The notes below the pieces were generated by a model. It saw nothing but the letters and a program-made list of their open reading frames with translations. It was not told where the DNA came from and made no database searches. Both the position numbers and the translations under genes were made by a program. This document shows, piece by piece, positions 2,122 to 9,821 of a DNA stretch of 18,212 bases (positions are counted from its first letter, which is position 1; each line of letters starts with the position of its first letter). The stretch lies in the sequence record NC_074653.1; one strand, written 5' to 3'.

Positions 2122-3045
2122 ATGTCTCAAAGACTCATCTTCTTTTTGAGCGCGTTTTCAATTGTCTATTTCACGCTCTTTAGCGGAAACCTATACCTTG
2201 ATTTAGTCATGTGGTTTATGGTTGTCATCTCCACCATATATGCGGCCGAAATATCCATGGCTTTATCTAATGCACGGCTGTGGTATAACGTCTTAGTCGT
2301 TTCTATGGCTATGTCATTGCCTCAGACCTTATTTGCCATAAAGCTAGCCAGCAGCGGGAAATATCTAGCTTCATGGATAGACACGCTGGGGTCCACGCTT
2401 GTTGACGCTATGCTAGTGACAGCTGTCCTTAGGAGGTACGTTATCGGCTCTCCCATGATATGGAATATGGTACCATTCTTGATAATGTGGTCCATGGCGG
2501 CTCTTTATGTCAACTATCACGCTTATGCTATCACCTACGGCCTTTTCAGACTCCCTGAGTGGGTGATAGTGGTAATTGGTATACTCCTCCCAATGGTCCT
2601 AGTGAGGCCCACGGGACTACCCCGTAAGAGCGAACTCATCATGTTGTTACTACACGCAGTTTCTACTGGGGTGTCCTCATACCAACTGTCCAATGTAATT
2701 GCGCAATTGCCTATCCATGAAATACAGCTAGGAATAGTGGCCACCATCCTTGCCACACTGCCAGACTTCTTAGTGGCCCTAATTATACGGAGTGCTGTGG
2801 CGAAAATCCTCAACGAGGTGGCCTCCGAGGAGGAGGCGTTAGCCACAATGCTAGCGTCCGCGGTTCACGACCAAATACTTATCCCAGCGCTAGTACTCAC
2901 ATTGTACCCGGAGGTGGCCGCTTACTATCCACACTATTTCAATGTCATAATTATCCTCCTCAAATTCACGCTGTTATTCCGCAATGTCTACTGGCTATTC
3001 GGCGTACCCTTCACCATCTTCTTGTTGTTAATGCCTCCCGTGTAG
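2122..3045 (+). CDS. CaCA-family (Na+/Ca2+ exchanger-like) membrane transporter (307 aa)
   Basis: Polytopic hydrophobic protein with two alpha-repeat-like motifs: SLPQ...LGSTLVD and TLPD...LASAVHD. Start moved from 2044 to ATG 2122, which avoids overlap and sits 25 nt after TTTTAA. Confidence 0.75.
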   Translation: MSQRLIFFLSAFSIVYFTLFSGNLYLDLVMWFMVVISTIYAAEISMALSNARLWYNVLVVSMAMSLPQTLFAIKLASSGKYLASWIDTLGSTLVDAMLVTAVLRRYVIGSPMIWNMVPFLIMWSMAALYVNYHAYAITYGLFRLPEWVIVVIGILLPMVLVRPTGLPRKSELIMLLLHAVSTGVSSYQLSNVIAQLPIHEIQLGIVATILATLPDFLVALIIRSAVAKILNEVASEEEALATMLASAVHDQILIPALVLTLYPEVAAYYPHYFNVIIILLKFTLLFRNVYWLFGVPFTIFLLLMPPV

Positions 3046-3225: not shown

Positions 3226-3260
3226 ACAAAATATCTTTTTTCCACTCCGTTAGTTGTTCC

Positions 3261-3710
3261 ATGCCAGTAAAGACCATAGGTTTCGGCGTGTTATATATCC
3301 ATAGGGAGTGTCCTATATGCCTCTCCATATTCCGCCTTGAGACTATAAAGAAGGCGATTAATACACCAGCAAAAATGAGGTTAATCATAAAAGACGTTGA
3401 AAGCCTCTCCTCTGAGGAGAGGCTTAGGCTGTGGGGCTATAGGCTTACTGAATATGGAATAGTACACCGCGTGACGGTTCCATTGTTAGTAATATATTGC
3501 GTTGACGAAACAACAGGTGAGTGGATACCTATATATAAAAAGGAGTGGAGGCCTCTAATGGGACCCTTTCTGTCCGAGGCCGATATAAGAGAGATGTTAG
3601 CTTTAATAACATCTTTTCAATGGGAGTGTGTGCGAAAAAGCGGTAGCCATATTGGAGAATCTGGAGAAGAAGAAGTCCAAAGGAAAGCTAGAAAAAGACG
3701 AAATTCTTAA
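3261..3710 (+). CDS. Thioredoxin/glutaredoxin-fold protein (149 aa)
   Basis: CPIC (C17-C20) after a hydrophobic strand, and the cis-Pro-like motif TVPLLVI (P74). Confidence 0.65.
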   Translation: MPVKTIGFGVLYIHRECPICLSIFRLETIKKAINTPAKMRLIIKDVESLSSEERLRLWGYRLTEYGIVHRVTVPLLVIYCVDETTGEWIPIYKKEWRPLMGPFLSEADIREMLALITSFQWECVRKSGSHIGESGEEEVQRKARKRRNS

Positions 3711-3719
3711 GGCGTTTAA

Positions 3720-3983
3720 ATGAGGCAATGCAATACACCGCAAGAGGCAATTGACGTAGTCTATAACAATATTTTCCACTTTGCCAATGGATACGCTGTG
3801 ACAAGAGATGTGGCCGAATGCCTCATTAAACTCAAATTAGCATTATTGCTCTTAGCTCTTGACACGGGCCACATGTTGGATATACAATACTCTAATTTCG
3901 TGATACGCTGTGAGGCTTACTACTGTTATGTCCCTCCCTCCATTTATGAAATCTTACGCTATATGAAAATGCGCCTTACCTAG
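3720..3983 (+). CDS. Hypothetical protein (87 aa)
   Basis: ATG 9 nt after the upstream stop, non-overlapping, 4 Cys. Confidence 0.75.
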   Translation: MRQCNTPQEAIDVVYNNIFHFANGYAVTRDVAECLIKLKLALLLLALDTGHMLDIQYSNFVIRCEAYYCYVPPSIYEILRYMKMRLT

Positions 3984-5515: not shown

Positions 5516-6424
5516 GTGTCCGAGGTACTCCCTTTAGCCAAATATGGCATATACATTTTGTTAGCGGCAATACCACCTCTTGACGCTTTTGTTTTCGGCA
5601 CAATGGCTGTGTCATTAGGTGTATCCGACAAACCGTATCTGGCTATAATCCAGGGAATTGCGGTGGCGGCTATTGTCTACTCACTAGCTAAGGAGAGCTT
5701 CTTACGTGGCATTGCGGCCGCACTAGGCGCTATAGGCAGCGCTGTCATTACATTAAATGTCACTGACATATTCCTGCAGGCCTTTGGACAGTTTTTTGGT
5801 ACAGTTGTCACTTCACTAATTGACATGGCTCTCAAAGGCCTATTCCTAGGCATTGCGGCTGGGGTGGCACTTGCGCTATCGCCTCTCTCATTGCTTTCTA
5901 TTATCACGGGCTTCATTTTGGCGCTCTTAGTTCAAATAGTAATGAGGGCTATAGACCTCATCGAAAGTGCATTGGAAATAGTCACTCACGCCCTCTTTAA
6001 GGGTATGCCTGTGGGAGTAATGGCTCTTTTAGCGCCTTACTACGGAGGTATAGTAATCGCACTACCGCTAGCTTTCGCTATTGTTATTTTCCTCACCCTA
6101 GTGGCGATAGCCATAGGCATTGCAATTGGGATAGCTATAGTGGCGATAGTGCTATCATGGACCGTGGTGTTCACGATTTTAGGATTCGTGTCACTACTAC
6201 TGTTTATCGCTGGGGTATCCCTAGCGGCGCTTCTAAAGCCAGTGAAAGCCTCACTTATGTCCCCCCTCATAGACACGCTAGTATTACTCATATTCCCTTA
6301 CCTAGGTCCAGCGCTATACACTAGTGGATACGCGGGCCTCCTGACAAGGAAAAGGGCGCTAGGCCTCTACCTAATCGGATTAGGACTATTCGGCGCAGTC
6401 CTACCAATAAAATTGCCTTTCTAA
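5516..6424 (+). CDS. Polytopic membrane protein (302 aa)
   Basis: Almost entirely hydrophobic (A/G/I/L/V). TATTAAAC starts 27 nt upstream. Confidence 0.85.
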   Translation: MSEVLPLAKYGIYILLAAIPPLDAFVFGTMAVSLGVSDKPYLAIIQGIAVAAIVYSLAKESFLRGIAAALGAIGSAVITLNVTDIFLQAFGQFFGTVVTSLIDMALKGLFLGIAAGVALALSPLSLLSIITGFILALLVQIVMRAIDLIESALEIVTHALFKGMPVGVMALLAPYYGGIVIALPLAFAIVIFLTLVAIAIGIAIGIAIVAIVLSWTVVFTILGFVSLLLFIAGVSLAALLKPVKASLMSPLIDTLVLLIFPYLGPALYTSGYAGLLTRKRALGLYLIGLGLFGAVLPIKLPF

Positions 6425-6447: not shown

Positions 6448-6765
6448 ATGAAGCCGAAAACCAAAAACTCACCCACGAAAAGAGGGAGAGACGTAATCGT
6501 GATAATCAATGAGAAGAAAGGCCTAGTGTGCGCGATAACCCCAGAGGAAGGCCCTAGGGAGGAAATTAAGAGGTTTTTAGAAATTGCACAAGACGTAGTG
6601 CTGAGAGCCTGGGTTTATGGGTGGCTTAAGAAAAACTGTGACTCATGTGGGAGGCGTATCAACGGCGCCGTTGCCGTGGCGGTTAAGGACTTCATGGGCG
6701 ATAATGAGAAGGTAATAGGGGTGAAGTGTGGTAGGTGCGTTGACGTTGACGCGGTGTGTAAATAA
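6448..6765 (+). CDS. Zn-ribbon/Zn-finger protein (105 aa)
   Basis: CDSC...CGRC pairs and a basic N-terminus. Confidence 0.75.
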   Translation: MKPKTKNSPTKRGRDVIVIINEKKGLVCAITPEEGPREEIKRFLEIAQDVVLRAWVYGWLKKNCDSCGRRINGAVAVAVKDFMGDNEKVIGVKCGRCVDVDAVCK

Positions 6766-6784: not shown

Positions 6785-7114
6785 GTGAAGTGGATAACCC
6801 ACATTTTATATGGTGTCCTAATAGGGGAATACCTAGGGGTCCCCCTAAGCAATTCCTTACCTCTCTCCGTGACCCACACGGTGCTGACAGACCTCCTAGG
6901 TCACCGCGGCCTTAGGAGGGCCCCATGGCATGGCTTCCTATCGCTGGCATTAGGCATATTACTATCTATGAATAATTTGATATACGGCATTGCCTTAGGC
7001 TTAACGCATATTCTCCTAGACATTATATCCCCAGGGCGCTTAGCGGTTTCGCTGTGGTATAATTTGCCTTTTATTGCAGCGGCTATTCTCCTACTAGGCA
7101 TAAATCTTATATAA
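6785..7114 (+). CDS. YdjM/DUF457-like membrane-bound metal-dependent hydrolase (109 aa)
   Basis: From GTG 6785: KWITH, DLLGHRG, PWHG, THILLD...G, matching the YdjM His/Asp pattern. The track start at 6728 runs through a T-tract and overlaps the upstream gene. Confidence 0.6.
   Translation: MKWITHILYGVLIGEYLGVPLSNSLPLSVTHTVLTDLLGHRGLRRAPWHGFLSLALGILLSMNNLIYGIALGLTHILLDIISPGRLAVSLWYNLPFIAAAILLLGINLI
7107..7114 (+). promoter_or_regulatory. TATA box overlapping the upstream stop codon
   Basis: TTATATAA ends in the TAA stop of the 6785 gene and starts 26 nt before ATG 7133. Confidence 0.6.
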
Positions 7115-8191: not shown

Positions 8192-8917
8192 ATGATGCTA
8201 CCTCCAGGTACGGGACTTTTAGGCCTCATTGCTATTGGCATATTCAACAGGCGCGCTATTCCTATCGCTCTCATTACACTTTTTGTAAGCGGCGCTTTAG
8301 CGGCTAAGGCCCCACAATATTACGCCTACTTTACGCCGCTTATATATTCAGCCATTGCTCTTTACGCGCTAAGACAAGAGGAAAGGGTGATAGAAAGAGT
8401 AATAGGTCTATTGCTGGGGCTGTCCATAATTTGGGGCTCTGACAATGCGGCAATTGCTGACGCTCTTAGGAATATATCAATAACGCTTATCACTCCATTC
8501 TTTAAGGCTGTCTATGATGTCCTAGGCCTCTTAGGTTTCGGCGTGGCGCTTACTTCACTGTTAGCATGGTCTCTCTTGTCACCACGGCTAATGGCGTTGG
8601 AAGAGCCGCTATTGGCTATGGGTTATGTCGTGTTAGGGTTCACTCTATTGTCAGGCATAGTCAACGGTGTCCCAGACTACTTACGCTTAGCCTTAGCTAT
8701 TGCGTTATTGAACCAGTTTTCACGGGCCCTTAGAGGTAATCTGGAAGCCCTAGGAGAGGTGGCCCCAGTACTATTCCTCCTAGGTGAACTTATCCCAGCC
8801 ACCCAGTTGACAGCTTTAGGTGCTGTTGTGGCGATTATAGAATTAGCATTGGGGATACTAAACAGAAAGCACTTAGCGGGTTCAGCAATGTGGGCCACAG
8901 CAATAACATTAGTGTAA
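8192..8917 (+). CDS. Polytopic membrane protein (241 aa)
   Basis: Multiple TM segments. CTTAAATA lies at 8163-8170. Confidence 0.85.
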   Translation: MMLPPGTGLLGLIAIGIFNRRAIPIALITLFVSGALAAKAPQYYAYFTPLIYSAIALYALRQEERVIERVIGLLLGLSIIWGSDNAAIADALRNISITLITPFFKAVYDVLGLLGFGVALTSLLAWSLLSPRLMALEEPLLAMGYVVLGFTLLSGIVNGVPDYLRLALAIALLNQFSRALRGNLEALGEVAPVLFLLGELIPATQLTALGAVVAIIELALGILNRKHLAGSAMWATAITLV

Positions 8918-8918
8918 A

Positions 8919-9821
8919 ATGCTGACTAGACTATTCCTTTACACAACTCACGCGATAGCGCTAGTTTCAGCATTAATAGTATTGGCTATATTCGGTATCT
9001 CACTCTCCTCCCTCGTGGCGGCCGCGCTAGTATACGCATATGTCTATGGCTTGATACAATTTTGGACAAGGCATGAATTGCCGCCACCTCTTTTAGTGTT
9101 CTTATATATAATTGCATTTTTCGGCCTCATAGGGGAGACCCAGTTTATAGTGGCGGCCTCCGTAATAGTGGCGGCGTTTATGTTGAAAGAGCTGAAAATT
9201 GTAAAGGGTAATCCTCTTGACGCGGCAGTCAGTGGATTAAAGCTAGCTGTCTTAGGAGGCTTACTCCGCATAGGATTATTGACAGTAGCCCCTATTTATG
9301 AGGCCCTCAAGGTCCTAAGACGTTCTCCGATTTTAGCCATTACAATGCTGTTATCATTTCTACTCACGATATTTGCGCTTCTCTCCTCACTACTACATAT
9401 AGAGTATACAGTCCTCTCCACAGGACCGCTAAGCGGTGTATACGGTTTTCTGGACCCAGGTAATCCGTTTTTATGGGCTGGCGTAATTGCATATGAGGAG
9501 TTGATAGGTAGGCCTATTCCCATTGCCGACGCATTTTTCGTGCTATTGCACTATCCCTCTAGGGCCGTATACGCTTTTGATAAAATCACCAAAGACCCTC
9601 TATTGGCTACCGCTTTCGCCTTATTCGTGCTAACGGTAATACATATTGGGACAAGGTGGCTGTGGGACCTCTATAAGAAATACGGCTTTATAGGTTCACT
9701 GTCAGGCCACGCGGTCTACAATGCTGTACTATCGGCGAATTGGACGACTTTCTTATTACTATTTGTTCTTGGAATTGCGGCTTATATCTATGAGAAAACA
9801 TTAAAATCTGAGGCGATATGA
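8919..9821 (+). CDS. CPBP (Rce1/Abi, type II CAAX) family intramembrane protease (300 aa)
   Basis: EELIGR (E193,E194,R198) = EExxxR. FVLLH (F207-H211) = FxxxH. LYKKYG...HAVYN (H264-N268) = HxxxN. Polytopic. Confidence 0.75.
   Translation: MLTRLFLYTTHAIALVSALIVLAIFGISLSSLVAAALVYAYVYGLIQFWTRHELPPPLLVFLYIIAFFGLIGETQFIVAASVIVAAFMLKELKIVKGNPLDAAVSGLKLAVLGGLLRIGLLTVAPIYEALKVLRRSPILAITMLLSFLLTIFALLSSLLHIEYTVLSTGPLSGVYGFLDPGNPFLWAGVIAYEELIGRPIPIADAFFVLLHYPSRAVYAFDKITKDPLLATAFALFVLTVIHIGTRWLWDLYKKYGFIGSLSGHAVYNAVLSANWTTFLLLFVLGIAAYIYEKTLKSEAI

Follow-up and report, generated by a model that had tools for sequence, protein, structure and literature searches.

The stretch of DNA analyzed here (the window, 18,212 bp) matches, identically and from end to end, the full published genome sequence of Pyrobaculum spherical virus 2 (PSV2; MN876845.1 / NC_074653.1), a member of the family Globuloviridae isolated at Pozzuoli with Pyrobaculum arsenaticum as its host. 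The PSV2 annotation comprises 32 genes, every one on the plus strand, as are the features within gp05 described below. Positions 3261-3710 are occupied by PSV2_gp05 (open reading frame ORF05-149), which encodes a protein of 149 residues and carries the database label "hypothetical protein"; the records of its relatives are likewise labeled hypothetical or uncharacterized. Our findings indicate that gp05 is very probably a thioredoxin-like enzyme, predicted to act as a soluble cytoplasmic, highly diverged thiol-disulfide oxidoreductase of the thioredoxin/glutaredoxin fold. By sequence count, its cysteines are residues 17, 20, 80 and 123. Neither a hydrophobic or transmembrane segment nor a signal peptide is predicted, and the protein should therefore be cytosolic. 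The paper on PSV2 gives HHpred annotations for four of the 32 proteins, gp05 not among them, and the words thioredoxin, disulfide and cysteine are absent from its text (bioRxiv 10.1101/2020.01.16.907410). The homologue of gp05 in the related Pyrobaculum spherical virus (PSV) is not among the structures solved by PSV structural genomics, and in the literature searched we found no earlier report linking Globuloviridae with a thioredoxin-like protein.

An AlphaFold2 model of gp05 built from a ten-sequence alignment (predicted local distance difference test score, pLDDT, 78; predicted template modeling score, pTM, 0.70) was used throughout, and a single-sequence model (pLDDT 44) was discarded. It predicts a fold core of residues 1-126 followed by a disordered tail, with strands at residues 6-13, 40-45, 75-81 and 88-95, helices at 18-34, 51-58 and 106-128, and a hairpin at 61-68. 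The predicted topology, b1-a1-b2-a2-(hairpin)-b3-b4-a3, is that of the minimal thioredoxin/glutaredoxin fold with its four-stranded mixed sheet. Consistently, the hits of a Foldseek search of the PDB with this model are nearly all thioredoxins (best E 3e-4). When the Foldseek shortlist is aligned with VIA-align, 137 chains score at Z of at least 8 and the top 50 all belong to the thioredoxin superfamily, the best match being poplar Trx-like2.1 (5nyk; Z 9.3, root-mean-square deviation 2.4 A over 93 residues); a scan of 48,161 chains made independently of Foldseek likewise has only thioredoxin-superfamily proteins in its top 50. In a library of viral models, PSV2 itself is followed by proteins of the globuloviruses TSPV1 and TTSV1 and then by phage and giant-virus thioredoxins. 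A protein-language-model search gives thioredoxin and glutaredoxin clusters as its only named hits, and an ESM Atlas shape search is concordant. Because the hit list is uniform, two invariant motifs fall where the topology of the fold calls for them and the language-model result is independent, we consider it highly likely that gp05 is a thioredoxin-fold protein. The first-pass annotation of this DNA had described it as a thioredoxin-fold protein with a CPIC motif, and the predicted model, the structural matches and the invariance of CPxC and of the proline predicted to face it bear this description out. Thioredoxin-like [2Fe-2S] ferredoxin and ArsC/Spx folds do not match the arrangement of CPxC and cis-proline or the list of structural matches. 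A Pfam hit to HicA (E 0.045) fell below threshold and was rejected.

The presumed catalytic residues occupy the places that the fold prescribes. The CPIC motif (C17-P18-I19-C20, positions 3309-3320) directly follows strand 1 and is placed at the N-terminus of helix 1, which starts at residue 18 in the model. The T72-V73-P74 loop (3474-3482) precedes strand 3, which is predicted to begin at residue 75; P74 is invariant in the family and V73 nearly so. P74 falls at the cis-proline position of the thioredoxin fold, and its conformation in gp05 would accordingly be cis. In thioredoxin, about 43 residues separate the first active-site cysteine from the cis-proline; in gp05, the distance from C17 to P74 is 57 residues. 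Between helix 2 and the cis-proline loop, the model contains a family-specific beta-hairpin insertion (residues 58-70, positions 3432-3470; strands 61-63 and 66-68 by DSSP), which comprises 13 residues including an invariant G66 and probably lies beside the presumed active site and substrate groove. In an alignment of 20 sequences at 25-91% identity, residues C17, P18, C20, S22, G66, P74 and P98 are invariant. CPxC and P74 are invariant across about 23 relatives, and C17, P18 and C20 are also kept in PSV, TTSV1 and TSPV1.

A second pair of cysteines appears to be of a different nature. Helix 3 of gp05 is about ten residues longer than that of thioredoxin and ends in the conserved C123 (codon at 3627-3629), whose proposed partner is C80 at the end of strand 3 (codon at 3498-3500). 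C123 is present in every full-length relative but one. Its companion is C80 in the PSV2 clade, TTSV1 and TSPV1 (nine sequences altogether) and, in thirteen PSV-clade sequences, C38, which immediately precedes strand 2; no sequence has both C80 and C38. The exception, the metagenomic protein P0008, lacks C80 and C38 together with C123, so that the family shows the cysteine patterns CC-CC, CCC-C and CC---, with an even count in all. By fold topology, C38, C80 and C123 would all be located at the far end of the sheet, away from the active site. Given this shared position and the swap of partners, we infer a structural disulfide between C123 and C80 (C38 taking the place of C80 in the PSV clade), which would staple helix 3 to the base of the sheet and would make gp05 itself an example of the even-cysteine rule discussed below. 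The remainder of the protein (residues 127-149, positions 3639-3707) consists of a Gly/acidic linker and an Arg/Lys-rich C-terminal tail, with pLDDT below 50 for residues 127-143. Of 20 aligned relatives, 18 have retained the linker and the basic tail, which the Thermoproteus viruses TTSV1 and TSPV1 and also P0008 lack; this segment may serve as a nucleic-acid, membrane or packaging tether.

How widespread is this protein? Every isolated globulovirus has one copy of the gp05 family: besides PSV2, these are PSV (ORF172; tblastn E 3e-8), TTSV1 (ORF5; hhalign probability 93.9%) and TSPV1 (GP3). gp05 is a hallmark gene of Globuloviridae. Eight relatives, all of them uncharacterized metagenomic proteins and none cellular, came out of an exhaustive phmmer search against 1.8 billion representative sequences (E <= 1e-3), and a profile search added eleven more. 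A scan of IMG/VR returned no relatives, and a scan of genome contigs with a single protein returned no cellular or proviral copy. The 944-residue protein P0009, which matches over 11 short stretches, resembles a repeat or low-complexity artifact and was excluded from the family. Two Logan contigs (ERR14375946, 7.7 kb; SRR33701729, 7.3 kb) have the gene order of PSV2 and encode gp05 proteins 86-91% identical to it, and PSV2-like viruses are therefore present in other sequenced samples. Compared with these two contigs, the ratio of non-synonymous to synonymous substitution rates (dN/dS) over the fold core of gp05 is 0.15-0.19, and the gene is therefore under purifying selection. The divergent member P0008 (Logan SRR28178316, 707-1114), which lacks the second cysteine pair and the basic tail, lies in a locus of altered gene order, with a gene for a CaCA-like membrane protein immediately downstream in place of a gp06 homologue. 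Upstream of PSV2 gp05, the 35-nt gap after gp04 contains an A/T-rich TATA-like heptamer (3228-3234), about 30 nt before the start codon, which would fit with a promoter of gp05's own and a nearly leaderless mRNA.

The cysteine content of the PSV2 proteome provides the context in which such a protein might act. A scripted recount over the 32 annotated coding sequences finds 72 cysteines in 5548 residues. Twelve proteins are devoid of cysteine. Among the 20 that contain it, 16 have an even number, four an odd number (gp13 and gp30 three each, gp26 and gp31 five each) and none a single one, exactly as had been counted by hand in the first-pass annotation, whose seven quoted examples are also correct. 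In a binomial test with an expectation of 0.5, the excess of even counts is significant (p = 0.006). Shuffling residues over the whole proteome gives a probability of 5e-5 for at most four odd proteins, a value inflated by the cysteine-free membrane proteins; a stricter shuffle was hence confined to the 20 cysteine-containing proteins and gives 0.011 for at most four odd counts and 0.027 for no singles. Antisense stop-to-stop open reading frames of at least 60 residues, which have the same base composition, comprise 11 even and 20 odd members, with 12 singles, and differ from the real genes (Fisher p = 0.004). The other globuloviruses show the same tendency, with 21 even and five odd proteins in PSV, 21 and three in TTSV1, and 19 and four in TSPV1. 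Together with PSV2 this amounts to 77 even counts out of 93, although the four genomes have orthologues in common, so that the samples are not independent and a pooled p value overstates their independence. The annotation had also called this bias a known signature of hyperthermophilic crenarchaea and their viruses, which agrees with the literature: it has been published for both, including PSV (Jorda and Yeates, 2011; PMC3177088, where Menon 2008 and Larson 2007 are cited as earlier sources; see also PMC4187194). Even counts need not all reflect disulfides. gp10 (6448-6765) has six cysteines overall, including two CxxC pairs 27 residues apart, an arrangement that suggests a zinc ribbon, and a double CxxC is likewise present in PSV ORF107 and TTSV1 ORF25; because such pairs are typical of zinc ribbons, part of the evenness in PSV2 would have another cause.

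The comparison of orthologues is free of the independence assumption and appears more telling than pooled parity. Within orthologous groups, the number of cysteines changes in steps of two, which is the pattern that selection for disulfide pairs would predict. Members of the gp08 family have 0, 0, 2 and 4 cysteines, those of the gp07 family 4, 4, 4 and 6, where TSPV1 shows a swap of one partner position, and those of the gp23/gp28 family 4, 2, 2, 0, 2, 4, 2 and 2. Each member of the gp06, gp17 and gp18 families has four and each member of the gp19 and VP1 families two, and in the gp05 family the swap between C38 and C80 leaves the total even. Such paired gain, paired loss and swapping of partners make a cleaner comparative case for real disulfides than does parity in one small genome. 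Two observations on individual genes concern the counting itself. The annotated starts of PSV ORF172 (AJ635161.1, 5493-6008) and of the metagenomic protein P0021 are probably too far upstream: eleven relatives start at a methionine that matches an internal methionine of ORF172 just before strand 1, and the N-terminal extension adds a fifth cysteine, giving ORF172 an odd look, whereas four cysteines remain when counting from the internal methionine. In TTSV1, ORF2 (1749-2114, 121 residues) matches the C-terminal portion of the adjacent helicase-like ORF1 (202-1716) in alignment, with two cysteine columns in common, and looks like the product of a partial tandem duplication.

How might gp05 promote the formation of viral disulfides? 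We envision that C17 and C20 would cycle between dithiol and disulfide, exchanging disulfides with client proteins, and that oxidizing or reducing equivalents would be provided by the host, through its protein disulfide oxidoreductase (PDO) and thioredoxin reductase. The combination of CPxC and a valine before the cis-proline is closer to what is found in glutaredoxin, in DsbA and at the C-terminal site of PDO than to the strongly reducing CGPC of thioredoxin; by analogy, the motif type leans towards an oxidase or isomerase without being decisive. That gp05 is a redox-active enzyme which, with host help, assists the oxidative folding or isomerization of viral proteins is our tentative reading, the chances of which we would place just short of even. 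A more specific form, whereby gp05 would make or reshuffle the structural disulfides of the cytosolic even-cysteine viral proteins within the disulfide-permissive cytoplasm of Pyrobaculum, seems possible but doubtful. Candidate clients are at hand: the soluble cysteine-containing proteins of PSV2 comprise 11 with even and four with odd counts, the former including gp02, gp06, gp07, gp10, gp18, VP1/gp20, gp21, gp24, gp25 and gp32.

Several considerations weigh against this proposal. gp05 has no significant match in Pfam, in PHROGs or in the PDB when searched with phmmer and profiles, the PDB giving chance hits only, and glutaredoxin (PF00462), thioredoxin (PF00085) and Thioredoxin_3 (PF13192) profiles have no match in any of the six reading frames of PSV2, PSV, TTSV1 and TSPV1, while controls were recovered; likewise, hmmscan with gp05, its core and PSV ORF172 finds no Pfam family of the thioredoxin clan even at E <= 10. 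The fold assignment derives from one predicted model based on a shallow alignment, and its Z of about 9 lies only moderately above the background of 7-8 stated for the tool. Five of the 16 even-cysteine proteins (gp16, gp17, gp19, gp23 and gp28), each with an N-terminal anchor, have ectodomains that may be beyond the reach of a cytosolic enzyme, and VP2 and VP3, the major proteins of the envelope, are free of cysteine. Moreover, as the host has PDO, a viral catalyst could be superfluous or could serve another purpose.

Could the virus catalyze its own disulfides independently of the host? The first-pass annotation had suggested a pathway analogous to that of poxvirus G4, and while the thioredoxin fold and an even-cysteine signature maintained through evolution stand, this private pathway is not supported: no recognizable oxidase was found in the four globulovirus genomes. 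Profiles for Erv1/ALR sulfhydryl oxidases (PF04777) and a hidden Markov model for VKOR have no match in any frame of the PSV2, PSV, TTSV1 and TSPV1 genomes, and Pfam scans of the remaining 31 PSV2 proteins detected no redox-related domain. All five polytopic membrane proteins of the virus, gp03 (2122-3045), gp09 (5516-6424), gp11 (6785-7114), VP2/gp14 (8192-8917) and gp15 (8919-9821), are free of cysteine, which rules each of them out as an oxidase of the DsbB or VKOR type; cysteine occurs only in soluble and single-anchor proteins, and of the latter VP3/gp12 is cysteine-free too. A self-contained pathway would need another upstream partner for gp05 as its terminal thioredoxin-like component, and the only candidate is gp06 (3720-3983; 87 residues), which might alternatively be a substrate. 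Its gene lies directly downstream of the thioredoxin-fold gene in seven of eight diverged loci, and its orthologues in all four globuloviruses keep four cysteines including a Cx4C (in PSV2 an N-terminal cysteine, C34 and a Cx4C followed by V-P-P); the poxvirus relay E10R-A2.5L-G4L offers a precedent for a pathway of this kind (PMC1318495). However, the adjacency is weak evidence because globulovirus genomes are collinear overall, gp06 has no Pfam match and no flavin- or quinone-binding signature, and a predicted complex of gp06 with the gp05 core, having a score of 0.00, weighs neither for nor against binding. We regard a self-contained pathway as very improbable, all the more so as the host supplies PDO. 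Pyrobaculum has this enzyme as its presumed cytoplasmic disulfide catalyst, mostly oxidized in P. aerophilum (Beeby, 2005; PMC1188242), from which species its presence in the actual PSV2 host, P. arsenaticum, is extrapolated, and the Pyrobaculum cytosol is rich in disulfides (PMC1188242; PMC3177088). With no recognizable viral oxidase, gp05 would be at most one viral component, reliant on redox enzymes of the host, for instance PDO.

Alternatively, gp05 may be mainly a reductant of the thioredoxin/NrdH type, which is itself reduced by host thioredoxin reductase and builds no structural disulfides. Its electrons would then go to host ribonucleotide reductase for deoxynucleotide supply, to a peroxiredoxin, to a viral protein that must be kept reduced, or to disulfides that are opened during entry and uncoating. 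The fold and the motif serve this explanation equally well, the signature 'Y-x4-CPxC ... TVP' is glutaredoxin/NrdH-like, and the gene is located in an early-looking left arm near the helicase-like gp02. Thioredoxin is also among the genes most widely common to double-stranded DNA viruses, usually together with ribonucleotide reductase (PMC4981718). Yet neither this reductase nor any other recognizable thioredoxin-dependent enzyme is encoded by a globulovirus, and a cytoplasm in which PDO is mostly oxidized (PMC1188242) is an odd place for a dedicated reductant. The proteome-wide pairing of cysteines offers obvious clients for oxidation or isomerization. CPxC and a valine before the cis-proline are, in addition, tied to less reducing potentials than CGPC. 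On balance, a mainly reducing role appears unlikely. Host thioredoxin is known to act as a scaffold in T7 DNA polymerase and in filamentous-phage assembly, and gp05 could conceivably be non-catalytic in a similar manner, as a scaffold or assembly factor with its Arg-rich tail perhaps tethering DNA or nucleoprotein, or could use CPIC to bind zinc or an iron-sulfur cluster. The retention of linker and tail in most relatives suggests binding beyond catalysis; TTSV1, TSPV1 and P0008, however, lack the basic tail yet have an intact CPxC core, and the invariance of both active-site cysteines, the proline between them and the proline predicted to face them at 25-91% identity is the pattern expected for chemistry. 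As for metals, C80 and C123 are placed by the model topology at the end of the sheet opposite CPIC, which would render a four-cysteine zinc site geometrically implausible, and established work on glutaredoxins indicates that a proline after the first cysteine disfavors an iron-sulfur cluster. Metal binding by CPIC thus seems unlikely in light of the model topology and the invariant proline, and non-catalytic and metal-binding roles taken together are quite improbable.

If gp05 indeed assists oxidative folding with host help, its family-specific parts might direct it to particular targets. The hairpin beside the active site would select viral clients, for example the nucleoprotein VP1 with its two invariant cysteines or gp06, and the Arg-rich tail would bring the enzyme to DNA, nucleoprotein or virion, where it would lock the particle by disulfides at assembly and perhaps unlock it on entry. 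This scenario, which is rather improbable as a whole, would make gp05 the first enzyme known from an archaeal virus to be dedicated to disulfide catalysis. In any case, in a family with almost no functional annotation, gp05 is the first easily testable enzyme candidate that is conserved across its members, and it gives a handle on how hyperthermophilic archaea and their viruses make intracellular structural disulfides and on whether a virus supplements the host PDO.

The even-cysteine bias as such is already known, as are virus-encoded thioredoxin-fold proteins in phages, poxviruses and giant viruses. Among known systems, glutaredoxin/NrdH-type proteins such as E. coli Grx1 and NrdC of phage T4 resemble gp05 in their minimal fold of four strands and three helices without the N-terminal thioredoxin extension, in a hydrophobic strand that leads up to a CPxC opening helix 1, in a T-V-P loop before strand 3, and in being small, soluble and sometimes virus-encoded. 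Unlike them, gp05 has no match to the Pfam glutaredoxin and thioredoxin profiles, contains a 13-residue hairpin, a longer helix 3 with a second cysteine pair, a linker and an Arg-rich tail, and has no partner ribonucleotide reductase in the genome. Classical thioredoxins (5nyk; Thermus 1v98; human 1erv; Sulfolobus 3hhv/2e0q) align with the model at Z 8-9.3 and root-mean-square deviations of 2.2-2.6 A over 85-93 residues, with CxxC and the presumed cis-proline at equivalent positions. They differ from gp05 in sequence (9-15% identity), in having CGPC instead of CPxC and in having a first strand and helix that gp05 lacks, such that the alignments begin at about thioredoxin residue 17.

Archaeal PDO, as exemplified by PaPDO of P. 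aerophilum, is a cytoplasmic CxxC protein of thioredoxin fold in the same cellular setting, and has a glutaredoxin-like C-terminal unit; its proposed task is the formation and upkeep of structural disulfides inside the cell (PMC1188242). It consists of two tandem thioredoxin-fold units with two CxxC sites (PMC1188242), whereas gp05 is a single unit of about 125 residues with one CxxC, and a sequence relationship between the two is undetectable, in keeping with the lack of any cellular protein in the search of 1.8 billion representatives. Poxvirus G4L, finally, is like gp05 a virus-encoded, cytoplasmic, thioredoxin-like CxxC protein, and poxvirus structural proteins carry disulfides (PMC1318495). 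To this component poxviruses add the flavin adenine dinucleotide-dependent sulfhydryl oxidase E10R and the adaptor A2.5L (PMC1318495), whereas globuloviruses have no recognizable oxidase; the host cytosol in which poxviruses operate is reducing, whereas that of Pyrobaculum already supports disulfides.

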